DNA of 63,960 nt, the filler included, from Octopus bimaculoides (Eukaryota), in NCBI RefSeq assembly GCF_001194135.2. It is 5 parts of 5 records of this genome, joined end to end, with 100 filler letters (N's around TTAATTAATTAA, not from the genome) between each part and the next. Parts side by side here need not be neighbours in the genome. Positions count along the whole stretch, not along the records: positions 47,610 to 55,473 come from NC_068989.1; 4 more parts are not named here. One strand, written 5' to 3'. Below, piece after piece: positions 3,071-56,740 of this stretch; position 1 is the stretch's first letter; each line of letters starts with the position of its first letter. A program made the translations under genes and the position numbers. The notes below the pieces were generated by a model. It was not told the DNA's origin. It did not search any database and worked only from the letters and a program-made list of their open reading frames with translations.

Positions 3071-4490
3071 TTGTTCTTGCAGTATATGTGTAAGTTTTGT
3101 GATGAGTTTTCCTTACATGTGTGTGTATCTTAGTGTCTGTATGGAGTATGGAGTAAAAATTGAAATTTGGTTTTCTTTTTCATGTTTTGCGCTTATCTTG
3201 ACTTACTGATTGAGCAGACCTATGACCAGTGGGATAACAATTATTGGTGGACCATTTCGTCTACAGATTTTGCCTTCTCCCTCTGTTATCTTAACACTAT
3301 TTCTTCCGTAAACTTTATGGCTCTGAGCAAAATTGAATTTTAAAATATTTTTGTTGTTTATTAGACGTCAATGTGTAACAGAAGGGAGCTGACATTTGAT
3401 TCGAGCAAGGAGAGAAAGAACGCGTACGCTCTTGTTATTGCTTTTTGTTGTCGATGATCCTGATTGTAACAAAAATTGTGTGGTTATTATCGTTCTGTTT
3501 GTTCATGGTAATCGCAGATATAATATTAGAAAGGATATCAAAGTCACTGTCTATAACTATAATTGTCAACTTTGTTGTTCTTTGGTTAAGCGCTACAATA
3601 AATCACATTCAGTTAGCTTAGGATTTTAAAAGATATTCAAGTCGTGAACATTTCTTCCTTGTAGGAGGTGTATACAACTACATGATTTAATCTGTTCTTT
3701 ATTTAAGATCGTGGGAATTTAGTGAAGCGAAATTTGGTTGCTATTTTTGAGAAAGGAAGTCGAAGACATTGAAGAATCTGCGTTGGCTCTCGCTTTTGTT
3801 GCTGCTACTGTTGTCTAGACCTGAGTTCTTATTGTGATCTTACGTTCTCAGTTGGAGGAGATCTGGTTTTCGTGTTGTTACTGTTTCTTAACTCCAGGTC
3901 AAACGTGATTACGCGAATCACAATGATAATTCTTCTTCAACCTACTCTCTCAGATTGAAAATGCTGGCAGTGAAGAGCAAAATAAAAACACCACGACCAA
4001 GATTCTAAATAGTGTCTAGGTGTGATCTTAGTCGGAGCTCATAACCTCGTCCTTTCTATGGAAGATTCACACTTTTTGAGATAACACTGAATTAAATCAA
4101 AAGTTTTACTATGTTTGAGTGAACATATTTCGTAACTACACAACACTCAACTCGTTACCAAATTTAATTCACGGTATCTAGCACCGACTAATGTTGTTTG
4201 GGATGGAATATAGTCGATGTATTAATCACAATATTGACTTGCTCCAGTTGCCCGAATTTGCTGGAGTACTAGAAGTGGTAAGAGGTTAAATTTTGTAATA
4301 TTTTAAGGCTGACTGTCTGACGATCCAGCAACACCCAGAATTTTCCCATGTATGAAGTATTCCTACTTTAGAACTTATGCAGCTTACAAAAAATGATGGA
4401 CACATTAAACAGGGTTTGAAATATAGTTACGTCTTTCACTAATCATTGCCTTGTCTACTCTCCAGCATATATTAAAAATTATTATTGTTG

Positions 4491-4545
<55 letters not shown>

Positions 4546-4547
<2 letters not shown>

Positions 4548-5106
4548 GCTCGACTTTTGCTTTGTATTTGTACAAGTTGACTCGACTCCAAGTCTCATCT
4601 AGAGACCTCAATAAACAACAAGTTAGAAGTTCATGTTGGTGTTATGCCTAGGGTGTCATATATTTGGTTTTGCACATAGTATTGTTCTAGAGAATGTTCA
4701 AGAACGCTTAAGAAAATTATGAGTTTGTTTTAAAATTTGAGATTACATAGGCAGTATCTTATGTAAGATATGGTCAGTTCCCATGAGCACAATCTTTTTG
4801 AATTTCTGCCATTTTGAGGTATCCTCGTACCTGACCTAGATGGGAATCAGCCCGTTTTGCTATCATTCTTAGGGAACCTATGGCAACAGGTATTGTTTTA
4901 TTCTTCAGGTTCCACATTTTGCCAATTTCTGTTTCAAGATCTTTATACTTGCTCAGTTATTGGTAAGCCTTGGCAGATACATTTATGACGATTGGGACAG
5001 TCATATCAATAAGGAGGCATGATTTTTGTTTGAAGTATTTCAATGTAATGTCTGACCTATTTATATCTATCTTTCTGTCAGTTTGAATAGTGAAGTTCCA
5101 GAGGAG
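4546..5106 (-). mobile_element. R4/Dong-like (restriction-like endonuclease) non-LTR retrotransposon 3' end
   Basis: LLWNFTIQTDRKIDINRSDI...LLIDMTVP...KYKDLETEI RLE motif. The 3' UTR ends in an (AAT)n tail at ~4480-4545. Same family as 24487-25491. Confidence 0.85.
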
Positions 5107-5693
5107 NNNNNNNNNNNNNNNNNNNNNNNNNNNNNNNNNNNNNNNNNNNNNNNNNNNNNNNNNNNNNNNNNNNNNNNNNNNNNNNNNNNNNNNNNNNNNN
5201 NNNNNNNNNNNNNNNNNNNNNNNNNNNNNNNNNNNNNNNNNNNNNNNNNNNNNNNNNNNNNNNNNNNNNNNNNNNNNNNNNNNNNNNNNNNNNNNNNNNN
5301 TTCTTCTTCTTCTTCTTCTTCTTCTTACTGTTATGTTTTTTTTCTTCTTCAAATTTTCTTCCATTCCTCGTCCAGTGTTTTCCGTACATCTAGGGCAGAG
5401 AAGGAATTGGAGAAGGTGCTTGCTTCTAGGGTTTTAGGGAAATCTCGGACAGTAGGGTTCCTCGATCATCCCTAGAGGCATTCCTGTATCAGGAGGGCCG
5501 CATCTATGTCATTCTCCCCGCTTTATTTCTTTACATTTTTATGCTATGCATATGTCCCTTCTTTTTCTGTGTATACCGTGTATACTTACCATTTTTTTAA
5601 TCATTTCATTATCATATGTAAACCCCCACACGTTATGTCTGTCTCTGTATTGTCTCCTTCATCCTTCGCCCTTGCGGCAAATAAAAGAATCGT

Positions 5694-5750
<57 letters not shown>

Positions 5751-5789
5751 GATGTATTATGCTTTGTATGTAATGATGTGAAAACAGTA

Positions 5790-6480
5790 TTGTATTTACG
5801 GCTTTGCTTTTAGCTTTTTATTCTCATACACAGTGAACCATTTATCATTTATACTATTTTTGCTCTCATACACCACACAGTTCCTATTTCTAATTTACGT
5901 TCTCTTTGCTTTAATAATCTTGGAAGCTACTGTATGACAATATTAGGAACGGAAACGTTTCCATTTGGTTTTCATCAAGATACTTGGGCAGCACACTTTT
6001 CAAATTTGTGTAGACATATTACAGAATATTCATTTACTGATTTTGTGATATAGTGAATTTGATGATTGCTTGTAGCATTTACTTATTGTTATTTTGAAAT
6101 GTCTGGGTATTGGCCTTTAGATAATTACTAACACACTCGCGTGTATAAGTATATCCCGTCTTTGTGAGTTCTTTAAAAGCGGAATGAGGTAGCCAATATT
6201 CTCTTATTTTATCAGCTTGGTCTGCTGTTGAAGTAAACTTATTAATTCTTTCTGATAGATTTTTTTTCATTGTGTGGCTCAGCATTGATTTGAAGTACCT
6301 AGAATTATGCTTACCATTAGTACCTTTATTCTAGATGCATTTAAAATATAGTTCACTGTCATATTTGTTGACTTGCACTTTGTCCGGGCATAATTTCGCT
6401 TCGGTCATATCTTATTGTATAGAAATCAAATTTATTTTCTGTTTTTTTTTTGTCTATTCGCTTTAGCTATCGTTATTTGT
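5790..6480 (-). mobile_element. Heavily decayed R4/Dong-like RT N-terminal fragment
   Basis: ADQADKIREYWL resembles PGPDxIxNxWL; VNEYSVICL resembles KNYRPITCL. Many stops. Confidence 0.4.
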
Positions 6481-7485
6481 ATGTTTCGCCATCCACTGAG
6501 CTTGTAGTTTTTACATACCTCCTATGTTAGAAATAGAAAATAGTGCTTGGTTTTTTTCATATTTCAGTATTTCTCAGATAAGTCTTCCTGTACTATTTTC
6601 TAAGTAATTTTTAAAATTGTACTTATTTTTAAATAGTTCACTCTTTGCATCAGGTATTTTCTTCTTCGTGCGCATTGTATATATTTCAGTTTAATTGCCT
6701 CGGTGGTATTGGCATGCATTGCAATGGACAGTTTTCTGTTTTCCTTTCAACAAATGTGCAATGTGTTGGTACACAAGCTGTAATTTACTAAGTGGAGAGA
6801 TACTCTGATTACATTCTTAATTCAGGTGATGAGTTCAACTTTAAGCCATTCAGCGATGGAGTAGTCACTCTTCACGAGTCTGCAATTTTACAGACGAAGC
6901 TAGTCTAGTCCAGTAATGGAGTTTCGCTCATGGGGTGGTTATCTCCCCTGTGAGTATATCAAAATGCGCCACATTACAGTTCTTAGGGCTTTAACTTTTA
7001 TTTATAGCAATATAGGCGCTACTCAGTAGCGAAATTAATGACGACTGAATTTTTCTTTTTTGGCTTTATATTGTGTATACCTGCTTACGTTACTTTANNN
7101 NNNNNNNNNNNNNNNNNNNNNNNNNNNNNNNNNNNNNNNNNNNNNNNNNNNNNNNNNNNNNNNNNNNNNNNNNNNNNNNNNNNNNNNNNNNNNNNNNNNN
7201 NNNNNNNNNNNNNNNNNNNNNNNNNNNNNNNNNNNNNNNNNNNNNNNNNNNNNNNNNNNNNNNNNNNNNNNNNNNNNNNNNNNNNNNNNNNNNNNNNNNN
7301 NNNNNNNNNNNNNNNNNNNNNNNNNNNNNNNNNNNNNNNNNNNNNNNNNNNNNNNNNNNNNNNNNNNNNNNNNNNNNNNNNNNNNNNNNNNNNNNNNNNN
7401 NNNNNNNNNNNNNNNNNNNNNNNNNNNNNNNNNNNNNNNNNNNNNNNNNNNNNNNNNNNNNNNNNNNNNNNNNNNNNNNNNNNNN

Positions 7486-7541
<56 letters not shown>

Positions 7542-7699
7542 TCTTCCAAGTACTCGTTACTGATTTTCTCCTTAATTATTTCTTTATTGTACATTGTATC
7601 AGGTCTATTTGATCGTAAGTTCATATATGAGAGGGAACTATGTTTTGAGAGTCTAATTCTAACAGTATTTTGAGTTGGATGTCGTAATTCACCTCTTCT

Positions 7700-8290
7700 T
7701 TAATTACTAGGCTTAGTTCGTTTAATATTATATGAATTTGATTTTACTCTGCAATAGAGATTAAATGTTGAGTTGATTGTCGCCATTGAGGTGATTGCTT
7801 TCCAGTTTAGTGTTAACGGATGTATATTGAGATACTTATAGTTTATGAATATCATTTGTAAGCATTAATAGTCTTATTTCATACGTCCATCAGTGGAGCC
7901 AGAGATAGACGGAAATATTAGCAATAAGAAGTCTCAATGAAAAATTCGTTTTTTCTTTTGGAAGAGAAAGTACTGATTAAAGTCGTACTGCAGAGTTAAA
8001 TGACATTCTTCATTTTGACAGACTAAGGCTGCTATAGTGTCACACAATTGTGCGTATGTGGGTGTGCTTTGTTTACGCAGTATTTGTCCTGTATTCAATA
8101 TCCAAGAAAGCTATAGAAAGCTTTTCGGCAATCGATTCATGCCATGTTGAGAGTTTTGTTTTCTTCCTTGATATCTCTTACAACTATTCGTTTATCAAAC
8201 GCTATCAGAATGATAATCCTTTCATACATCTTCCTTGGTTCTGTAGTAAGGTATTATTATCTTTCAGATGAGTAGCCAGCCTACTGGAAG
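7700..8290 (-). mobile_element. Decayed non-LTR RT fragment
   Basis: LNMA*IDCRKAF resembles the AWIDYxKAF RT motif. Multiple lesions. Confidence 0.4.
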
Positions 8291-8442
8291 GTGTATATGT
8301 CAGAGATGATTATGGAGTGCCGTATTTATTCTGTGGTAAGCCATATTCCCATGCATAAATACATCACTATATATATATATATATATGATTGTATGTGTGT
8401 GTAATGTGTACAATGTATATATATGTGTATGCTTGTGCGCGC

Positions 8443-8483
<41 letters not shown>

Positions 8484-10014
8484 TGTGAGTGTGTAGATTT
8501 CTGCACTATTCGTCTTGTTTTTTTAAAGTTCTCCAGTAGGTATGTTATCAGATTTTTGTGTTTTAATCCAACCTTCTTGTTATTCCTTTTGGAAATCTAT
8601 TTAGTTATATAGTTCAGATACGTAGTTTCTATTAATGTGTTCCAATATCTTTTGCTTGTTGTCTTATTTCTCGTTATATTTGTTCTAATATCTAATTGAC
8701 CAAACTCCATACCTTTGAGAGTAGCACACACAATTTTCAAATTCTTGTTCAGCAAGATTTGTCATGAGCAGATGTTTTACATTTGTTTTCACTTTCAGGA
8801 TTTTCGGTTTTATTGCAATTTCTATATTTCTGATAACTTTTTCCCGTTATACTTTACAGCTTCTACTTCTGTTTCACTTACAGAATATATGACTCTTCTA
8901 TTTTCTTGATGTATTATTTTTCCCTTCTCTTTGTGGAGGGTTTGGGGAAGTAATAATATAAGCTATGAGGATAGAACTTGGTTTCCTTCAATGCAACCAT
9001 GACTACTCGCTAAATTACATTATTCAGAATATCGACATTGAAATTGGTTTCCGTGGAAGGCATTCTTTGAAAACCTGCTCACATTTTGCTATCAAGTTCA
9101 TTGCATTATTTGTTGTTTGTCTTCTTGCACGTTGTAGTTCTTTCTCTTTGGTGATTTTGATAGGATCAATTTTATTCTATTACGTGTTTTATTTCCTTTC
9201 GCGTAATATGCAGGTCCTGGGGTATTTTTTGTTGTCATTGGTTAACTGAATTATTATTTCTATTCGACTTGTTTTTAATCCCCTTTCCCAAATTTGTGAT
9301 ATTGTATTTATGTGAATGTCAGCTATCTTCTCTTTATTTGTTTTGTTTGTCGTGTTGACTATAATTTACATTTTCTTCATTCTGTTAAAGTATTCCCATT
9401 GATTTTAAATGGCTCACCGACTTTGGGAAAGTTGTCAGCTTTCGTTGGAGGTGAAATCTTATGATTTTAGTGGGTTTGATACTTATTGTTAGTTGATACT
9501 TATTGTTAGACTAATGTGTATTTCATTGTCATATGTTGTCTGTTTTCGGTTTTTGACATATTATATCATATTGTATTTTTCCGAGTGTTAGTCAGTCACA
9601 TGTTAATCGGAAAACCGATTCATGGAAAGAGCAAACCAGTTTTGGCTTTCTTTATAAAATGACGACCATAATGGTGAATAGTGATGAACAGGACACTGGA
9701 AGTCTAACAGAGTGTGACGCGTCAATTACTGTGCCTGTTGCAGTCATATAATAAACAAATCAAAAGAAAACATAAAGAACGTTCGGATATTTCCGTGAAT
9801 TCAGTTGGCTAAATTTTATTTCTTCCTCTGTATCGTACTATTCTTTTATTGAGTGTTAGGTAGAGTATGGCTTTCCAGCAAGCGTACAACACTTCCAAGT
9901 CGTGTTCGTTGGTCCATCGTTATAGGATGTTATAAGTGTACTCCGATAGATGATATTTTATCAGTAGAAATATATTTATTCGTTTGTAAAGACCTGAAGA
10001 GAAGACGCCAAATC

Positions 10015-10150
10015 TTACTTCTTTATTGCCCACAATGGGTTAAACATAGAGGGATCAAACAAGGACAGACAAAGGGATTAAGTCGATTACATCGAGACCA
10101 GTGCGTAACTGGTACTTAATTTATCGACCCAGAAAGGATGAAAGGCATTC
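10015..10150 (-). mobile_element. SINE family A fragment (core ctttcatcctt..gggtcgataaattaagtaccag)
   Basis: Reverse complement matches copies at 15425, 21535, 35654, 58600 and 61770-62300. Confidence 0.7.
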
Positions 10151-11880
10151 TGTCACTGATTGTAGTGTGGTCACATTTACATCCCATCATAATCATTAAC
10201 CATTATTTAGAACTTAAGATATTTGGAATTCTCTCACTTGTTGATTATCGCTAGGTAGGTACTGATGAAGCAGGTCTGTGATCAAAAGCATTCACAATAT
10301 ACCTAGTCCGCATTTTTTTACGCACAATGCGCAATAAACTACGCTATTTTTATTTAAATTTCGTTAAATTTTGTTTAGGGGCGCAGTGTATTGCATGGGA
10401 CATATTTATTTGATATATCTTACATGACGAGTGACTACGTAAATGAGCCCCTGCCTGCTCTTGTAACTCAGATATGTGCATTTTCGGTTGTGCTTAGCAC
10501 ATTGTATAACGTTAGTTCTTAATGCTGTGTAACTCTAAATCAGTTCTCATTGATCTGAGTCTCTGATAAAATGCATTCAAACTTTGGACATTTCATTCTT
10601 TCGTTTATATTACTACGTTGTTCACTATGTACCGCCAGTTTTAAGAAGATAGTGTTCCATTTGAGAGACACTGGTTGCTGTTCCTAGCAGGGTGAGTGGC
10701 CGTGTAAACAATTCTCACTGATTCCTTTCGATTTATATATGTTTTATATTGCTTTGCTTTTTGGCGTCTCTGTCCTGGTACTAATGATGAATTGGTTGCA
10801 CTTAAAATAATTATTTGTCATTGTAAACAAATTTTCATCCTGAATAAAGACAAATAAAACATATAAGCATTGCGTGTAGTTTATGAGGACGGGTAACATC
10901 ACTGTTTGTATGACTTAGTAATTTTACTTGCACTTTCTCTGATATGAAACATTTGCAACTTTTCAAATGGAATGTCAAGTTTCAGAATATGTATTATAGT
11001 TCTTTATTCGAAGAACTATTCCTGATCAAGCAGGCTCACGATCAAGTGCGTTTCAGTTGTGATTATCTATTATTCTGTGTAACACAATTTATGTCCATGG
11101 GTTACCTCTAGACAATGTGAAAAATGATTAATATTTCCTTTAAACTTTGCTTTTCTTATACTTATTCAAACCGCAAAGAATTCCTATCAACACATTATTG
11201 TGACTCTCCCCAACTACTCCTACTCATGATCAAAGATGCACATATTTTAAGGCACTAAGGGACATGCTCCAGAGTTTATGGTTAAGCAACTGACAAACAA
11301 CTCTCTGATATTCAGCACAATATTTGCTCTAACGATATTTCTGCATCATCAACTCAGCGCAAAAACTGTGAAATGTAATGGAAAAATATCAGTTTCAAAA
11401 CATTGATGTCCGGGTCACAAAAGCACAGTTTGAAGGGAATAGTGGTCATACTCTTTCATTTATAGATAGGAAATAATAATTACGGTCCAGAGGCAAAATG
11501 AGACAGTTTTCACAGTGTTATCTGGTTTTGACTGAGATCTGCATTATCGAATGTGTCTTTCTTTTTTCAAAACATTAGGGTGTAAATTGTAGGGGCTCTA
11601 CCACTTGATTAAATCAGCGTCGTTTTAAACCACTGGTCAGTAGATGGCAACATCCCTAAAGCGTAAGGCTACATGTAGTTTCATGCTATATTTAGTCTGA
11701 CGCTTGTCTTGCTTTCGAATTCTAAATCACACAATGTTCGATTATATGTTTCATTATTTTGACTCGATTATTATTATTATTATTATTTTTATTTTCATAT
11801 GCACTCAACAGATTGGAAAGGAAAAAATCCTAACATCGGGCTGAAAGTAACCTTAGATGCCAAAAACCCTCCTATCGGGC

Positions 11881-11947
<67 letters not shown>

Positions 11948-47609: not shown

Positions 47610-47649
<40 letters not shown>

Positions 47650-48860
47650 TCAGTGTGCGTGTGAGTGAAGCTCTGTATCACTGGAGACCAATATTATAAT
47701 AGTAATACCTGTTAAAACTGTTTCTCTTCAAATAGCTCTGGGTCGGCTAAAGACAAAGCTTCGCGAGTGCTTTGGCAAATGGATATCGTGTGTATGCATG
47801 TATGTATGTGCGAATGTGTGTTCATATGGATATAGTATTATTGTCTCCATGTTTTGATATTCTTTGATAGATCTAAGTGTTTTTTGTACCTCCTATAAGA
47901 ACGTGCTTGTCCACATTCAAATGTTTCTATACTTGGAAACAGATGACGTTTGGTGATATGCCGGGTATATGTTTGTAAAACAAATAATAACCGCCTTATC
48001 GTATCTCGTACAGCCCATACTAACATGGAACTGTGGAGGATTAAACGATGACGGTGATGACATTGATGATGATAGTGATGACAATTATGACGTACACCTA
48101 TGTATCATGTTTGTATATAGGTATAACACATTTAGAGAAACAATGAATACCTTAATAACATACGAGGGTTGCACCGCAAGTAATTTAGACACGATGAAAC
48201 ATTATCTATATATATACATACATAATTTATTATGTCGTTACTTCCCTCATTACAGATGTACTAACACACATACAAGGAAACATCCTATGAAGCCGGTCAA
48301 TAAACCACAATTTACTTAATGGTTCTAAGTCTAGGTTATAGAAAAAAATTACAATGAATCTAATATCATAAAGCAGGCGATGGCATTATTGTTTTGTTTG
48401 TTATGAAAGCAGTACTTTCAGTTTTAAGGCATATAATATTATTGAATCTATGGTTCCAGGAAGCATTCACTATATTTCAATAAATAGTTAATCAACAGCA
48501 TTAAATGGAGTGTTTCCCATAAGAATTATATATTGAACATTTATGCAGAGTCGTGCTCTAAATTCGAAATAAAAATAAGTACGAATTAGCTGGAAATGAC
48601 AGAAATATTTTCTTTGTTTTCGATAATTCATTTTCTTTATTATCAGACATGACAGTTTTTAGCTGCTCCAAGTAGAAGCAAGCAGCCAGATGCGCATCTA
48701 TTTCATTGGCTTATTAAACAATGCTTGGAGAACTTGTCCGTTGTCAAAATCTGCTTCGCATTGTTCTTTGTAATAGTACGCCAACGAAATCTCTAACAAC
48801 CTATACAAGAACTTCTATGTTCAGAAGATGAAACTAATATTTTAGATAAAAGTTAAATAT

Positions 48861-49127
48861 GCCCACGGGCATATGGCGTAGTGGTTAAGAGCGCGGGCTA
48901 CTAACCCCAAGGTTCCGAGTTCGATTCACGGCAGCGACCTGATTAATAATAATAATAATAATAATAATATAATAATAATATAATAATAATAGTAACATCG
49001 ATAGGAATGAGAACCCAGGTTCGAAATTTCCCCAAGACACCTGACGAAGGCTGGAGGGTATATCAGCCGAAACGTTGTGTTAACAACAAACAAGATGAGG
49101 ACGAATATCCGTCAAATGTAGATAATG
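48861..49127 (+). mobile_element. tRNA-headed, hammerhead-bearing short retroelement with 14-bp TSD
   Basis: TAAAAGTTAAATAT at 48847-48860 and 49128-49141. 5' gccc-ac-gggc hairpin, A box TGGCGTAGTGG, B box GAGTTCGATTC, (AAT)n, HHR module. Confidence 0.9.
49036..49081 (+). ncRNA. Minimal type I hammerhead ribozyme motif (copy 2)
   Basis: GACAC-CTGACGA-a-GGCTG[gagggtatat]CAGCC-GAAAC-GTT-GTGTT: intact stems I and II, palindromic ACGT stem III, predicted cleavage after GUU at 49076. Confidence 0.65.
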
Positions 49128-49629
49128 TAAAAGTTAAATATTTAAGAGCTTATAAAATTAAAGATTCACCTTTATCTCCAGCGCTGATGCTTGTGCAACC
49201 AAGGGTTATACTATTCTTACAATTCTAACCGGGAGTAAAAGCAGGACAAGAAATAGGATTTTGATATAGTTCCCGAGAATTGGAGCGGCGTATGCAAAGA
49301 GAATTACTTGTAAATTAAATCGGAGATTTTGCTAAAAGCAAAGATTTGAAAATGAGGAAAGAGAATTCAAATATACTTGACTTGAAACGTGATAAGGAAA
49401 AAGTATACGATACATTTGTTTGCTAGCAAGACTCTCAAACTTTAAGCTTTTAGACTTATAGAAAAAAAGGTTAAATACGAAGATTACAATTGAAGGCTCA
49501 TGCCTAAACACGTAATAGGCGTTTGATAATGTACAAATAAACTATAACATATTTCTGATTCACCTTTAAAATAGCCACGTGCACAAAACTGTACACAAAA
49601 AGAAATGTTGGAATCTTATTCATGAATTA

Positions 49630-50320
49630 ATGGTGATTCCTTGCTACTGTTTCATGTTTTGGAGTAAGAATTTCCCTTTCACACAACAATTCATGTGAAT
49701 TATAGTTATTACTTAAGTCTTGAAATACCCTGTTCTTCAATTCAGCTGGGGAATTCATCTGAGTCAAACTGGCATTACCATTCTCATCAAATAGTACTTT
49801 CCCTTTTCCTAACTGGAGGAGCCAGGTTGAAAACTGTTTTTGCACATTGGTCTCCATGTAATGAAGCTAGCATGTTAGTATTGAAGTAGAATTTCAGTAC
49901 TTTATTCCATAGGTGTGAAGACTTAATGCATGCTTTTATTTCATTAGATCTTGCTCGTCTCAGAATGACTGGTAATATCTGTCTGAAGTCTCCTGATAAA
50001 ACTAATGTAACTCCAGCTATAGATTTATTGTTGCCTCTGATGTCCTGTAAGATCTTACCAAGAGCTTCCATTACACCTCTATGTGACATGGTGCATTCAT
50101 CCCCAAATATAAAGTGACATTGGCACAACCCTTCTGCTGAACCTCAATCTTTGCTTATGTCACAAATTGGACTGTCACTTGTGACCACGTTTAGTGGTAC
50201 TTTTAAATCAGAATGATTTGTTCGCCCTCCTGGGAGATTTGTAGCAGAAAAGCCAGACAATGGTACGTCAACTTCAATTCTTTTTTGTTGCCTTACTTTG
50301 GAGAGAAGCAATGTTACTCA
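49630..50320 (-). mobile_element. Helitron PIF1-helicase pseudogene fragment
   Basis: LPGGRTNHS, IFGDECTMSH, LVLSGDFRQILPVI, IKACIKSSHLW and LLQLGKG motifs, with stops and frameshifts. Confidence 0.9.
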
Positions 50321-50488
50321 CGTTTTACCGTGCCACCAGGAGCATGAAGAAAGAAAGTTCCTCTGCATTTCTCTGACGATTGTGGAACGCAGCACCCCCC
50401 ACCCACGCGTACATATACATACAGTATAAAAATCAGATGAAATGGATGTGTGTATGTATGTGAGTGTGTGTGTGTGTGTGTGTGAGAA

Positions 50489-50567
<79 letters not shown>

Positions 50568-50647
50568 CGATTGAAGGGTTGTGTTGTCATGTACATACGT
50601 ACATACATAAACAAATAGGCATGCATCTTTCTTGTATTTATGAGTGC

Positions 50648-50689
<42 letters not shown>

Positions 50690-51219
50690 CACTTAGACGT
50701 CACTCTCTCTCTCTCTCTCACACACACACATACATGCAAAAAAGATGTATGCATATGTATTTATGTATGTACGTATACATGAAAACACATCCTTTCACTC
50801 ACACCCACAGACACGCGCACATACATAGATGTATACATTTCAGAGGTGTCTCAGCTAATGGTGTTGAGTGCGTTTCTTCTTACTCCTTTTTTCTTTTGTA
50901 CCTCGTTACTTTCGATGCAGCGTCAACGAATGCCTGCGGGTGACTGACCATCCTGCTAAAACTCCCTTTAAATACTCGCCGGTAGGCTCCAGCAGTCAGC
51001 ACCGGCTAACTGTCACGTGACACTGTCTAAGATTGAACTGACTACTGGAGGGGAAGGGCGCGTAGTTTTAGACCGCTGCCTCTCTAAACCTGCCTTCCAA
51101 CAGTGTCGTGTTAGTTTCAGTTCCAGCAGCCAGAACCGATCAGTTGTTTGGTGGTACAAGCTTCGAACCAAGAGTAGGGCGCGCTATGAATGAGATCGCT
51201 ACCTTGGCCTACCTGTCAA

Positions 51220-52310
51220 TCAGCGATGCTGCTTAAGTGTCAGCCAGCCTCGCTTCAGCCATGTATAAAATCTGGCTTTTTCGATTGCCTCATGTATCCT
51301 CCTTATTACTTTTCTCAGCCCTGAGCTTGAAAATGCAAAGCTTCTGTTAAATAACGTCTTCATTTTCCTTTCAATGAAGCCTCTAGCCCACACTGCCAGT
51401 CCATCCATGCTCTCCGCACTTTTCGATTAATCACTCATACCTTTTCCCCTTTCGTTGCTCTGCATTAACGATATACTATTCTCATGACATGTCAGCTCTA
51501 GCAAAATTCCATTTTTTCGGTCTGTATTCCATAAGATTAAGTCCGGTCTTTTTGTTGTTTTTATGAGTGGAAATATTAACAGTCTTTCCAAATCTGCGGC
51601 CAGCTCCCAGTATCCTTTCCATCTTTTGTCTGTCTCGTATATCTTATTTGAATGTCTGGCCTTATGACCTTTTCCCTCCTTCTGGAAGTATATTTTTTCG
51701 TGCTTTTCCACTTTTGGGTATTCTCCCCTATTATATCTCGCTCTTCTCCTTTAGTACCGCGCTTATGACAACGAGGACTTGATTGTGACGCCATGTATAT
51801 TTCTCTAGTGCTAGCCTGCAGTTTCACAGAACATGTCTCACCGTCGCTTCCTCTCCACATCTACATTCATCAGTTGTTTGTATATTCGACCGGACTAAGT
51901 GATCAGGAAGGATGTTTTTGCATGTTCCCAACTCAAAGTTCCTTCCAGGAGATTCTGCGACTGACTACATTGCACCAAATGTACATTTCGCTTTTCTTCT
52001 TCCTCCTTTCTCACTTCGTGTACCACAGCCTCTTTCATCAATTTTACGCTGCTCATGAAAAATGGCTTAAAATTGTGCAACCCTAGACCGACTCTTGCTT
52101 CTTGTGTTGCTCCGACTATATCGGTATGCCTTAGCTTTCCAATCGCCCCGTTTACTGTCTCTTCCGTTTACCGTTTCCTCTCTGTTCGTACCTTTGGCAG
52201 GTTTTCTCGGATGTTCTGATCTTTCGACTAACTTAGCATCATTGCAGTCCTTGCCTTTCCTGCCTTATATTCTTCGGCGATTGATGTTATCGGTTGTTGC
52301 AGCACGGGTA
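51220..52310 (-). mobile_element. Hero-like (RLE) non-LTR retrotransposon 3' fragment
   Basis: SIAEEYKAGKARTAMML, KVRTERK, LRHTDIVG, YTWRHNQVL, TTKRPDLILW...LLELT, ARGF and AIEKARFYTWLKRG motifs in order. Stops and frameshifts present. Confidence 0.85.
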
Positions 52311-52424
52311 TATAAATTATTGCATTTATGAAATGATATGAAAATGTAAATGTAGTTTATAACAATTTTGGGTTTTCAAGCCATTATATGACTTGTAATT
52401 ATTTGTAAATGGAGGAATTGTCTA

Positions 52425-53146
52425 TGGTTTAAAATCATTCTGTGGAATATGGAATCTATTAGGAAGATTATAACCATTCTTTAAGTGGTAACCATTTTTT
52501 AAAGGTGAATTATTATGGTTCGTTCCATTTGCTAGCACTGGATTTTGGTATTTTTCAGTTGCTGCCTTATTCTTCAGCATGACGTGAACTCGATTCAGCT
52601 GCTTATTTAGCCTTAGATTATGGTCGTCCATATCTTCCTTTTTAGCTTCAACCAATTCTTTCTCCATTTCAATGTCTTCACCATATGATAAGCTACTACA
52701 GCATTCTGTTCCATTTTCTCGAATTTCGGGCGATATAGATTTCAGCTTTCAGACTACAAATCTCGAATAATCTTCTGGAGATCTTGTGCTTATTGCAAAG
52801 CTACCTTTTCTATTGGAGATGGTGTACGGTTTTCTTTATTATGAACACTGACTGCTACCATCAAATTATCAGTTTGTAAAGATTTTGAACACATTTGTGT
52901 TCAAGATTTTGAACACATTTGGTTGGATGTTTCATTTCACAAAGCCTGACTGGAGCACTGGAAGCACTCTGATGCATGACTTGTGGTAAGCCGAGAAAGC
53001 TGTTCTTTGTACATTGTTCATCTCCGAGTTGGTGCAATGGACATTGTGTCACTGCTACCTGCAATACTGCTGTTGCAATTATCTACAGGTAGCTACTTTA
53101 CTCGATGTTTGTACCTGTGTTGTTTAATCAAGTTGTTTCTCACAGT
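52425..53146 (-). pseudogene. Inverted partial copy of the dystrophin-family pseudogene 3' region (post-ZZ, coiled coils, stop)
   Basis: Reverse complement aligns with 54274-54924 (~88-97% by eye, with indels) and encodes DDHNLRLNKQLNRVHVML. Contains internal stops. Confidence 0.93.
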
Positions 53147-53228
53147 GTTATTAATTTAACACGACTGTAGTGTGACTTTGGGCGATTTAAAAAGATAAGA
53201 AAAGCTGGACACTCTTTAACTTATTACC

Positions 53229-54924
53229 ATGTCGCCCGACAACAGCATACAAGCTTCCAAACCTGTGGTAAAAGAGACAAAAACTATGATGATACATACA
53301 GTAGCTTTACAAGGAAAAATTGCAGACTATATTTCACAAGAAAGAATTACAAATGGCTGGGAAAAGATAGAAACTTCCAATCGTATCCCCTACTAGCTCA
53401 GTTGTATGACAGAGCGTACATTTTGGAACCATCCACTTTATTCTAAAATCATGGAAGAATTAAGTGAGAATAATATTCGATCTGCTGCCTACCGAACTGC
53501 AATGAAGTTACGAAATCTGCAGCAAAATCTGAATTTGGACTTGGTGCCTATCGACAAAGTTCGCAATGTCTTCAAGCAGCATGGCTGTCCACAAAATGAA
53601 GACCCTTGGCATGACCTCAATGAAATCTACGAGACCTTTTTGCCGACTGTCAACATCCAAGATTAGACAAGACCACAAATATACGGTCATCCAATCTCGT
53701 TCAGAATTTTATATTAAATTTATACGACAAAGAAGAGGTGTAGTCCATGCTCTGTCTGTGAAAACTGCTCTTGAAGCTATATGTGGTGGACAGCTTGGCG
53801 ATAAATACAAATATTTTTATGAAGAAATCAGTGATCCCAGCACCTTTATTGACTGCACTGTGCTGTCCAGTTTTCTTGTGGCTCTCATGCCGAGTCCTGA
53901 TTTAATTCATGAAGGAATTGCATATGGCGGTTTAAACTCAATTCCTACTTTAGAAAGTTGTCTTCAAATGAGTGATTGTAAATATGGTATTTCTGAAGAC
54001 ATGTTGTGTGCCTCGCTTAACAAATAACCCTACACATTGGTCTGGTTACCAACCGTTCACAGAATTGTCACTACAGAATCTGGTAAGCATGAAGCCAAAT
54101 GTAGCATCTGCAAAGATTTTCCAATTATTGGATTCCGCAATCGGTGCCTTAAGTGTTTCAAAATTGATATGTGTCAACAATGTATCTTCAACGGTAAAAC
54201 TAAAAGCAAACACAAACTGATGGAATTTTGTGCTGTTGTCAGCACCAAACAAGATATGAAAGCATTCCTAATTACTGTGAGAAACAACTTGAGTAAAAAA
54301 CACAGGTACAGACGTCGAGTAAAGTACCTACCTGTAGATAATTGCAACAGCAGTATTGGAGGTGACAGTGACACAATGTCCACTGCACCAACTCGGAGAT
54401 CTACAATGTACGAAGAACATTGTGAAATGGAACATCCAACCAGAGTAAAGCAAATGTGCTCAAAATCTTTACAAACTGTTAATTTGATGGTAACAGTTAG
54501 TGTCCATAATAAGAAAAACCGTGCACCATATCCAACAGAAATGGTAGCTTTGCAACAGGTACAGGATCTCTAGAAATTATTCGAGATTTGTAGTCTGAAA
54601 GCTGAAATCTAAATCGGCAGTTGGCCGAAATTCGAGAAAACAGAATGCTGTAGTAGCTTATCATATGGTGAAGACATTTGAATGGAGAAAGAATTGGTTG
54701 AAGTTAAAAAGGAAGATGTGGACGACCATAATCTAAGGCTGAATAAGCAGCTGAATCGAGTTCACGTCATGCTGAAGAATAAGGCAGCAAGTAAAATATA
54801 CCAAATCCAGTGCTAGCAAATGGAACGAACCATAACAATTCACCTTTAAAAAAATGATTACCACTTAAAGAATGGTTATAATCTTCCTAATGGATTCGAT
54901 ATTCCACAGAATGATTTTAAACCA
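53229..54924 (+). pseudogene. Intronless dystrophin-family (WW-EF hand-ZZ-coiled coil) processed pseudogene
   Basis: ATG 53229; WW NGWEKIETSNRIPY*...FWNHP; AYRTAMKLRNLQ; NFILNLYD; VWLPTVHR; HEAKCSICKDFPIIGFRNRCLKCFKIDMCQQC. Nonsense codons at 53394 and 54025, and at least 2 frameshifts around 53620-53730. Confidence 0.93.
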
Positions 54925-56740
54925 CAATGTAAATGTATGTACACATTCTCAAAAGACAGCCAAACCTATATATGTATTTGATGTTATCATCACTTAACTC
55001 TCCTTTGTATATGTATATATATTTTTACTTTTGTATAACGGCCGTATAACGGTATTAGCACAAATGAAATTATACAAAAGTTTTCAACATTCTGTCACGC
55101 CGGACAAAATGCTTAAGGGCATTTTAGTATTCAAATTCTGCCAAGATTTATCATACTATGCGGGGACAATAACATGAATACCAACTCAGCACTGAGGTTG
55201 ATATGAACATCTAGACGGTTTCACTGAATTTCCAGCCTTGTGTCAATATTAGAAAGGAATATATTCATTCCTTTCCGTAACCTCATGTGATATTACAAAA
55301 TATCATATCAAATAATATAAAATGTCATGTACTTAGCATATGTACTTTTATACACAATTATACACGCACGAACAAAAGCAAACGAATATATATATTTGTA
55401 TATATGTATATCATAGCATTCCTAACAAAAATAGCTACTTGATTTGTATATATATATATATATATATATATATNNNNNNNNNNNNNNNNNNNNNNNNNNN
55501 NNNNNNNNNNNNNNNNNTTAATTAATTAANNNNNNNNNNNNNNNNNNNNNNNNNNNNNNNNNNNNNNNNNNNNGCAAAACTAAAGCGCAGGGTATTGAGA
55601 TGTTTGAGGCCGTAAATAAATAATATAGATGAAAATATACAAAATAGTTTAGCATCTATATTGGTTTCAAATTTTGGCACAAGGACAGCAGATCTGAGGG
55701 AGAGGCTAAGTTGATTACATTGACCACAGTGCTTGACTGGTACTTATTTTATCAACCCTCAAAGGATGAAAGGCAAAGCTGACTTTGGTGGAATTTGAAC
55801 TCAGAAATGTAAAGATGAACAAAATGCTGCTAATGATTGCAACAGCTCACTGCCTTTTTTAGTATATATATATTACAATCTCAATCTCATCATCCTCAAT
55901 TTAGCATTTACTTTTCCATGTTTGAAGAATCAAACAAGAATATGTCTGGTTAGTTTCCTACAGCCAGATGTCCTTCCTATTTCCAATCCCCACTTGCTTC
56001 CAAGCAAGATAATAATCCCCCAATTTATCAAACAACAGCTAGGGCATATTCATGGAGAGAATGTGGAGCAAACCAGCAACACTATATGAATGTGCTTTTT
56101 GCTTACAAATATCATGCACCATGTCAGGGAAGGCAGGTCAAAAGGCCTTTGATGTGCTTTGCAGTGGACTGTAAACAAATAACACTATGAGTGAAGCTGT
56201 GGTTTATAATAAGCAAGCAAACACACATAAAATGAAGGAGTTATGAACTCTCTCACACAAAACACATAGACACACATGCATATCTTTTATCTTTTACTTG
56301 TTTCAGCCATGCTGGAGCACGACCTTAAAGGGTTTTTGTCAAACAAAAACAAAGAAACACACACATAGATATATACATATGTATACATGCATACACACAC
56401 ACACACACGTGTGTATGCATGTATATATATATATATATTTCAACACCNNNNNNNNNNNNNNNNNNNNNNNNNNNNNNNNNNNNNNNNNNNNNNNNNNNNN
56501 NNNNNNNNNNNNNNNNNNNNNNNNNNNNNNNNNNNNNNNNNNNNNNNNNNNNNNNNNNNNNNNNNNNNNNNNNNNNNNNNNNNNNNNNNNNNNNNNNNNN
56601 NNNNNNNNNNNNNNNNNNNNNNNNNNNNNNNNNNNNNNNNNNNNNNNNNNNNNNNNNNNNNNNNNNNNNNNNNNNNNNNNNNNNNNNNNNNNNNNNNNNN
56701 NNNNNNNNNNNNNNNNNNNNNNNNNNNNNNTAACTTGTTT

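Follow-up and report, generated by a model that had tools for sequence, protein, structure and literature searches.

A processed pseudogene of a short dystrophin-like gene in Octopus bimaculoides, arranged as two opposed copies and probably formed by a single dual-primed retro-insertion

The window, by which we mean the whole stretch of DNA that was analysed, comprises 63,960 nucleotides of the Octopus bimaculoides genome (GCF_001194135.2; five parts joined with filler), and all positions given here count along it. The piece that holds the locus (47,610 to 55,473; NC_068989.1) matches chromosome CM046609.1 of assembly GCA_001194135.2 at 100% identity. Two opposed copies of dystrophin-like sequence lie in this piece between 12-bp direct repeats, with the following parts:

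52343..52354, no strand: left target-site duplication, 12 bp, AATGTAAATGTA, an exact direct repeat of 54926-54937
52355..52422, minus strand: 3' extra of the antisense copy, without counterpart in the sense copy; parent coding sequence of the Asn-Gly-rich repeat region
52423..53146, minus strand: left arm, antisense copy, from just past the ZZ domain through the coiled coil and into the Asn-Gly repeat
53147..53157, no strand: inversion junction, the putative meeting point of two cDNA 3' ends (position uncertain by about 10 nt)
53147..53228, plus strand: 5' UTR of the sense copy, about 82 nt, immediately upstream of the ATG at 53229
53229..54271, plus strand: spacer coding part of the sense copy (Pfam, frame translations and Argonauta exon blocks 1-12)
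about 53352-53435, plus strand: WW motif (alignment to PF00397-carrying homologues)
about 53445-53790, plus strand: EF-hand_2 (Pfam, E 1e-21)
about 53794-54066, plus strand: EF-hand_3 (Pfam, E 1e-13)
about 54085-54216, plus strand: ZZ (Pfam, E 4e-10)
54272..54924, plus strand: right arm, sense copy of the left-arm mRNA segment (repeat search, gapped alignment and Argonauta blocks 12-16)
54926..54937, no strand: right target-site duplication, 12 bp, AATGTAAATGTA, direct repeat

The order WW, EF-hand_2, EF-hand_3, ZZ, coiled coil is that of the dystrophin-family C-terminal module (dystrophin, utrophin or DRP2 type). EF-hand_2, EF-hand_3 and ZZ exceed the curated Pfam cut-offs, and the coiled-coil region of the pseudogene aligns with orthologues. 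Pfam did not call WW in the octopus copy, where a stop codon (53394-53396) interrupts the motif; only alignment reveals it (W44...W66..P69 in the conceptual protein), Pfam calling the domain in three homologues. The ATG at 53229 opens the reading frame with MSPDN, matching the start region of a cephalopod mRNA (ATGTCGCCGGATAAT) whose leader is at least 89 nt long. The original observation that the spacer holds a 5' UTR and WW, EF-hand and ZZ regions stands, the EF-hands and ZZ through Pfam and WW through alignment.

The closest intact protein found by exhaustive HMMER searching was Argonauta hians 'dystrophin-like isoform X2' (79% identity, E 2.6e-119), and this match, the Pfam domains and the presence of stops and frameshifts bear out the earlier assignment of the locus as a dystrophin-family pseudogene. 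Word-indexed protein searches with the N-terminal 399 aa, the C-terminal 234 aa and one homologue did not find the O. bimaculoides parent, which is uninformative because the same searches missed the 79%-identical Argonauta protein. In RefSeq, a gene model drawn over the pseudogene yields XP_014776018.1 ('dystrophin', 305 aa), which is unsuitable as the octopus dystrophin-like protein; the NCBI and MetaClust protein models here are predictions that skip stops. The pseudogene model is the sole entry of the GenBank gene table within 10 kb on either side. Six-frame Pfam scans of the 4.7-kb left flank found only a PIF1/Helitron-like remnant, and an Rfam scan of the piece gave no match. A location within an AP5Z1 intron, as first suggested, stems from other, unrelated pieces and has no supporting domain in the left flank.

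In Argonauta the gene is split over 79 kb into at least 16 exon blocks, bordered by GT/AG. All 16 align collinearly with the sense copy and five of them (12-16) with the antisense copy, four exon junctions being fused in the reverse complement of the left arm (blastn), and neither copy contains intron sequence. A single blastn HSP joins 53338-54419 to positions 181-1285 of a spliced 2675-nt cephalopod mRNA, and in a second cephalopod contig an intron acceptor falls precisely at a point where the pseudogene is continuous. Disabling changes comprise in-frame stops at 53394-53396 and 54025-54027 and at least two frameshifts at about 53640-53735 in the spacer coding part, with further stops and indels in both arms. 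As judged from its sequence, the locus is a processed pseudogene, that is, a retro-copy of a short dystrophin-like gene.

In a gapped alignment, 52423-53146 is the reverse complement of 54272-54924: of 647 ungapped columns, 596 match and 51 do not (92.1% identity). Exact matching extends to 49 nt at most, and there are seven internal indels, by which the right arm is short by 58, 14, 5, 1 and 1 nt and the left arm by 7 and 1 nt. The repeat search returned six collinear pairs of inverted blocks of 87-98% complementarity:

52425-52503 with 54846-54924
52495-52545 with 54803-54853
52544-52710 with 54639-54805
52731-52771 with 54576-54616
52773-52897 with 54451-54575
53001-53146 with 54274-54419

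This similarity is far beyond chance. Both methods recover the predicted long inverted repeat with its spacer of about 1.1 kb (53147-54271); the original arm coordinates are off by no more than 2-3 nt on the outside and some 10 nt on the inside, at the junction, where arm identity begins at 53146/54272-54274 and the blastn homology of the left copy to Argonauta reaches 53150. Each arm has lesions of its own, in-frame stops among them. The left has also lost 7 nt and gained a 24-nt tandem duplication (52880-52927); the right has lost 58 nt after 54419 and, elsewhere, 5 nt and 1 nt. These lesions bear on whether the assembly put two separate pseudogene copies into one contig, or made a collapsed or chimeric join, the piece being a 7.9-kb contig between N gaps of 2.8 and 3.7 kb and inverted repeats being troublesome for short-read assemblers. 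Artefact palindromes carry identical arms, whereas the octopus arms are 8% apart with private indels and share no exact run beyond the 49 nt given above, and matching 12-bp duplications at the outer ends would be unexpected of a chimeric join. An assembly artefact is unlikely given the arm difference, the private lesions and the bracketing 12-bp direct repeat, and we give such a merger almost no weight.

The two outer ends of the insertion are unequal. Positions 52352-52422 align without gaps over 71 nt with Argonauta exon positions 74854-74924 at 73% identity (24% for the right flank as a control), and the in-frame translation of the 3' extra, TIPPFTNNYKSYNGLKTQNCYKL, aligns to Argonauta TVFPIINGYKPYSGLQTQNSLKL. 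The right arm terminates at Argonauta position 74853 (blastn), and the sequence right of 54937 has no homology to the parent. With 71 nt of mRNA 3' of the point where the sense copy stops, the antisense copy cannot have been derived from it. The left target-site duplication adjoins the left limit of mRNA homology and the right one adjoins the end of the right arm, a 12-bp duplication having a chance probability of about 5e-4 by Markov shuffles and about 7e-4 by random windows of the same piece. At each outer end the copy breaks off within the coding sequence for the Asn-Gly repeat, and neither end has poly(A) or a run of A or T; intact orthologues run about 180-200 residues beyond these ends before the 3' UTR. 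No T-rich endonuclease-type cleavage site is present at the putative nicks, which flank AATGTAAATGTA. A poly(A) tail and a T-rich site are the hallmarks of L1-type target-primed retro-insertion, and their lack counts against the retro-insertion favored below.

We favor, with a probability of about 0.7, a non-functional processed pseudogene that was created whole by one retro-insertion spanning 52355-54925. The empty site would have read ...GAAAATGTAAATGTATGTACAC... before insertion, and a staggered break at AATGTAAATGTA would have left two 3' overhangs. The plus-strand overhang (ending at 52354) may have annealed through about 3 nt of microhomology within the Asn-Gly-repeat coding region of the spliced mRNA, priming an antisense cDNA of about 790 nt (52355-53150), and the minus-strand overhang would have annealed 71 nt further upstream on the mRNA and primed a second cDNA, which would have extended from 54925 leftward to about 53150, as far as the mRNA 5' end, and placed the sense sequence on the plus strand. 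The two cDNA 3' ends would have been joined at about 53147-53157. The order of priming and the responsible enzyme are what we infer in this scheme; the data themselves show the structure, the lack of introns, the target-site duplication, the unequal ends, the symmetric decay and the capacity to fold. About 655 nt of the mRNA (Argonauta 64479-74853 by exon) are represented in both cDNAs. This overlap is the probable source of the hairpin arms, and its length would require strand displacement or two RNA molecules. On this account the hairpin potential is a by-product of the copying mechanism.

The same minus-strand order, B'-A'-B, with its junction at the mRNA 5' end, would be given by a first-strand cDNA that reached the mRNA 5' end, self-primed 1.1 kb upstream, copied its own 5' part and was inserted at a break; this snap-back would also account for the missing poly(A)-dependent hallmarks. 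A copy cannot exceed its template, yet the left copy holds 71 nt of parent sequence missing from the right, and end-trimming of the right copy alone would have to be added, together with an extra step for a double-stranded linear hairpin. Snap-back alone, moreover, gives no reason to expect 12 bp of target-site duplication and microhomology at each end, and we consider this mechanism unlikely.

Polarized with Argonauta over 519 sites, the derived changes number 17 in the left arm and 15 in the right, and each arm has private indels. Both copies appear to have decayed neutrally since insertion, with about 3% substitutions each as well as indels, stops, and frameshifts. The equal counts fit a simultaneous origin and speak against an ordinary processed pseudogene whose 3' part was later duplicated in inverted orientation to its 5' side, by fold-back repair or a replication template switch. 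Fold-back repair commonly yields inverted duplications with a spacer, and an arm difference of 8% implies an age sufficient for a complex history. The left copy's 71 nt, missing from the right copy, were nevertheless not copied from it, and the target-site duplication encloses the composite and not the sense copy alone. Under random DNA rearrangement it would be coincidence that the inner junction falls where the mRNA leader begins and that the outer ends fall at the limits of the insertion. We regard such a later duplication as very improbable; the 71-nt extension is the reason for down-weighting both it and snap-back relative to dual-primed insertion.

The raw spectrum between the arms, with 15 G/A against 5 A/G differences, was considered as an editing footprint. 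Once polarized it showed no surplus of A>G, only G>A and C>T substitutions of the ordinary kind in either copy, and the footprint was rejected.

The 2571-nt insert has a predicted minimum free energy of -1271 kcal/mol on the plus strand and -1275 kcal/mol on the minus strand, with 613 and 602 predicted inter-arm pairs, respectively. The model agrees with the original prediction that a read-through transcript can fold into a long duplex, here an imperfect one of about 650 bp from either strand (about -1270 kcal/mol, with some 610 inter-arm pairs). Should a transcript read through, this duplex would make a good ADAR substrate, and hyper-editing could reasonably be expected.

It had further been proposed that this may be an hpRNA/siRNA locus aimed at a dystrophin-family gene. 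As a functional hairpin-RNA locus, on the model of Drosophila hpRNAs such as Nmy and of inverted-repeat pseudogenes in mouse oocytes, it would give dsRNA that is diced into siRNAs or enters the piRNA pathway and silences the parent dystrophin-like gene. The predicted pairing includes perfect helices of up to 49-111 bp when G-U pairs are counted, an intact cephalopod gene family has coding sequence homologous to the arms, and a direct precedent is on record. Against this, the arms are only 92% complementary, differ by seven indels and have drifted symmetrically, with no sign of constraint or of maintained pairing. A small-RNA survey of 32 molluscs, including O. bimaculoides libraries mapped to the same assembly, reported no evidence of endo-siRNAs, of a dedicated siRNA pathway or of an siRNA Dicer/Ago (PMC12479628). 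Exact look-ups of four pseudogene ORFs in public assemblies, covering transcripts and copies in other species, gave no match. On these grounds we consider the proposal very unlikely; no result points to any use of the hairpin or to a regulatory role. We infer lack of function from the neutral-looking decay together with the literature.

It would likewise be surprising if a ready-made hairpin pseudogene were transcribed in octopus and acted on its parent via small RNAs or as a hyper-edited ADAR sponge. The small RNAs could in that case be of piRNA type, or Dicer products loaded in the miRNA Argonaute. If it did so, it would be the first regulator of hpRNA type to be described from a mollusc, and the locus would have regulatory importance only if small RNAs or editing were demonstrated.

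Short dystrophin-like proteins of molluscs (Argonauta hians GAB1606543.1; bivalves, 580-660 aa) have the same order as the octopus copy from leader through coiled coil, at 79% identity for Argonauta and 44-46% for bivalves. The octopus copy differs from them in having no introns, in its stops and frameshifts, and in missing the last 180-200 or so residues and the 3' UTR.

In its overall layout, two opposed cDNA segments of one RNA within one target-site duplication, the insertion resembles twin priming, which was reportedly modeled by Ostertag and Kazazian in 2001 for 5'-inverted L1-mediated insertions. Read on the minus strand, an inverted segment (5' UTR to coding sequence) is followed by a direct one (the 3' part of the coding sequence plus the 71 nt). 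As in twin priming, the opposed cDNAs derive from one mRNA species, the 3'-most segment lying one way and the 5' segment, which reaches the mRNA 5' end, the other, a single target-site duplication surrounds the composite, microhomology is found at the junctions, and the cDNAs overlap. Twin priming is known for human processed pseudogenes (3 of 23), overlapping cDNAs are also documented, and in human L1 insertions with 5' inversions the overlap has a median of 12 bp with quartiles of 4-17 (PMC12016303). In contrast, the octopus overlap is about 655 nt, well beyond those values, the target is not of TTTT/A type, the host is a cephalopod, and poly(A) tail and 3' UTR are lacking because both primings were internal to the coding sequence. 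With poly(A) missing and so long an overlap, classical twin priming was rejected as an exact fit. On the dual-primed reading, the locus would exemplify, for a cephalopod, the retro-copying of a cellular mRNA primed through microhomology and independently of poly(A), and its value as an anatomical specimen is modest.

Inverted-repeat pseudogenes in mouse oocytes can form intramolecular dsRNA directed against the parent gene; these siRNA sources require a Dicer isoform specific to oocytes and have been demonstrated by sequencing of small RNAs. No equivalent is known from octopus. Nmy of Drosophila simulans is a retroposed inverted-repeat copy of Dox and, like it, the octopus locus is a retro-copy of a protein-coding gene in the form of a long inverted repeat, whose potential hairpin arms match parent coding sequence. 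The arms of Nmy and Tmy are nearly perfect, whereas those of the octopus are 92% complementary with indels; Nmy also has proven siRNA output and a genetic phenotype. Unlike Nmy's host, the octopus belongs to a phylum reported to have no endo-siRNA pathway (PMC12479628). The comparison is instructive for origins, as the octopus locus, on the dual-primed reading, would show that raw material for hpRNAs of the kind represented by Nmy can arise by a single retro-insertion, with no later DNA duplication.

On sequence comparison, the insert at 52355-54925 is identified as a processed copy of a dystrophin-like mRNA, its parent being represented here by the Argonauta hians orthologue, whose gene spans 79 kb (L003 2001-80806). 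By blastn, the sense copy (53252-54926) aligns with this gene in 16 collinear exon blocks and the antisense copy (52352-53150) in five, as reverse complement; AG/GT borders the Argonauta blocks, and the octopus copy has no intron sequence. A single blastn HSP joins 53338-54419 to positions 181-1285 of a spliced cephalopod transcript contig of 2675 nt (L004), which encodes a full-length protein of 793 aa (P0159). A second cephalopod contig (L002) starts at an intron acceptor (…TTTTTGCAG|GAG), and both octopus copies are uninterrupted at the same point. Homology between Argonauta and the retro-copy stops at a CAAG|gt donor (L003 2088). The roughly ten residues GDIDTSHPTH of the Argonauta protein model (L003 2088-2123) are missing in the octopus retro-copy, and the squid-type mRNA has different residues there, which points to an alternative or mis-called donor in that model.

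Word-indexed protein searches returned bivalve, brachiopod and gastropod "dystrophin-like" proteins with 38-46% identity, mostly 360-660 aa long, and one Logan-derived cephalopod C-terminal fragment (P0010). They missed the Argonauta orthologue, so negatives in these searches do not equal absence. An exhaustive HMMER search recovered it (P0011, GAB1606543.1, "dystrophin-like isoform X2, partial"; 775 aa, 79% identity to the query, E 2.6e-119); true long dystrophins (3000-3900 aa) scored lower than this protein, at 36-42% identity.

A conceptual translation, in which reading frames were stitched and stop codons given as X, contains Pfam domains EF-hand_2 (E 1e-21), EF-hand_3 (E 1e-13) and ZZ (E 4e-10), preceded by a WW motif (GWEKIETSNRIPY*LSCMTERTFWNHP) broken by a stop at 53394-53396. 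The arms encode the post-ZZ region, followed by a coiled coil (…DDHNLRLNKQLNRVH…) and an Asn-Gly-rich repeat. Further features of the two copies are as follows.

Directly before 53229, sense copy: leader of 82 nt
53229, sense copy: start codon ATG, opening MSPDN and resembling a cephalopod mRNA in its start region
Between ~53640 and 53735, sense copy: at least two frameshifts
54025-54027, sense copy: second in-frame stop
52880-52927, left arm only: 24-nt tandem duplication (AGATTTTGAACACATTTGTGTTCA x2), which postdates the insertion

The original prediction of a dystrophin-family pseudogene is thus borne out and sharpened to a processed, 3'-truncated copy, with exon blocks fused without introns and with stops and frameshifts, which was dead when inserted or soon became so. 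The RefSeq "dystrophin" XP_014776018.1 (P0001, 305 aa) is a gene model on this pseudogene (window 53566-54573; L001 10001-11008), as is an older model of 307 aa (P0160, a MetaClust entry). Each bypasses the stop at 54025-54027 by invoking an intron, and both are very likely mis-annotations.

The inverted repeat proposed for 52425-53146 and 54274-54924 is real: a repeat search linked the two intervals, which lie either side of a ~1.1-kb spacer, by six collinear inverted blocks of 87-98% complementarity. When the right arm is aligned, with gaps allowed, to the reverse-complemented left arm, 596 of 647 ungapped columns match (51 mismatches; 92.1%), the longest uninterrupted identical run is 49 nt, and the seven internal indels comprise deletions of 58, 14, 5, 1 and 1 nt in the right arm and of 7 and 1 nt in the left. 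The interval 47610-55473 is 100% identical to 4045-11908 of the O. bimaculoides GenBank locus L001 (GCA_001194135.2, CM046609.1, ~61.32 Mb), where it forms a 7.86-kb contig between N runs of 2.8 and 3.7 kb. Both contig ends, at 47610-47642 and 55442-55473, are (TA)n adjoining these gaps, which probably reflect unassembled AT microsatellite. An assembly artefact producing the inverted repeat is unlikely, as it fits neither arms that have diverged by 8% and carry lesions private to each nor the direct duplication that brackets the structure.

Three features pin the origin: a target-site duplication, unequal outer ends and symmetric decay. The duplication is the 12-nt direct repeat AATGTAAATGTA, its left copy at 52343-52354 and its right copy at 54926-54937, beginning one base past the arm end; Markov shuffles gave a match of such length in that position in 0.05% of cases, and window pairs drawn at random from this piece did so in 0.07%. 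The left copy reaches beyond the inverted repeat, the parent reading frame carrying on through 52352-52422 (71 nt that align without gaps, at 73% identity, to Argonauta exon positions 74854-74924), whereas the control sequence right of the right arm shows background identity (24%). Since the left copy carries parent sequence missing from the right, it was not copied from it. Snap-back, in which one cDNA self-primes on itself, would give the correct segment order but cannot make a copy longer than its template, and DNA-level fold-back duplication after insertion fails in the same way while also needing several boundary coincidences. At 519 three-way sites polarised with Argonauta, derived changes number 17 in the left copy and 15 in the right, with 4 unresolved; this symmetry, together with private indels in each copy, indicates that the two are equally old and that their decay is neutral-looking.

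Together, the duplication, unequal ends and symmetric decay fit one dual-primed retro-insertion at 52355-54925, with reverse transcription of the mRNA proposed to have started from each of the 3' overhangs left by a staggered break. The plus-strand end (…AATGTAAATGTA-3') would have primed a ~790-nt antisense cDNA from within the Asn-Gly-repeat coding region, at a site with ~3 nt in common with the orthologous Argonauta exon. The minus-strand end would have primed 71 nt further upstream, the second cDNA extending to the mRNA 5' end, and the 3' ends of both cDNAs would have been joined at ~53147-53157.

The same piece carries other features outside the insert.

~49870-50329, minus strand: PIF1-like helicase remnant (Pfam PF05970, E 4.6e-33, six-frame translation with stops), likely left by a Helitron-type element that has decayed
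50440-50780: compound microsatellites, (TG)n(AG)n then (CT)n(CA)n, forming a short low-complexity inverted repeat (e.g. 50595-50671 / 50700-50776, 86%)
51427-51860, minus strand: stretch of strong C/T skew with a pair of 94-aa ORFs that overlap

The 94-aa ORFs have no Pfam match at E<=0.01; one contains KRPDLILWN...LLELTC, which may resemble the PD-(D/E)xK nuclease motifs that certain non-LTR elements carry. The suggestion of an AP5Z1 host intron drew on pieces outside this locus and finds no support in this piece, the 4.7-kb left flank containing no host-gene domain and only the PIF1/Helitron-like remnant.

Folding into a long hairpin, as originally predicted, is sound if a transcript exists: the predicted folds of the two strands of the 2571-nt insert each contain ~610 inter-arm pairs, with MFE of -1271 and -1275 kcal/mol. 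An Rfam scan of the piece gave no match, and exact-match queries of public assemblies with four ORFs retrieved no contigs. The nearest functional analogue is Nmy of D. simulans. Its kind of function is not readily transferable, because small RNAs surveyed in 32 molluscs, among them O. bimaculoides with libraries mapped to the same assembly, gave no evidence for endo-siRNAs or for a pathway dedicated to siRNAs (PMC12479628), and the arms show no sign that complementarity is maintained. A putative regulatory role as a hairpin RNA or siRNA source is disfavoured. Should a transcript read through the locus, its hyper-editing by ADAR could reasonably be expected, but this would be a consequence rather than an established role. 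The locus is of modest interest unless small-RNA or editing data indicate otherwise.

The geometry of the proposed insertion is that of twin priming, which is reported in human for ~20% of L1 insertions and 3/23 processed pseudogenes, with cDNAs that sometimes overlap (human median 12 bp; PMC12016303). Departures from that model are substantial: the octopus locus has no poly(A), 3' UTR or T-rich nick site, and its cDNA overlap is ~655 nt, from which we infer strand displacement or two RNA templates. The locus belongs to known kinds, being both a 5'-inverted retro-copy and an inverted-repeat pseudogene; what sets it apart is how far the two cDNAs overlap, giving a hairpin in one step.
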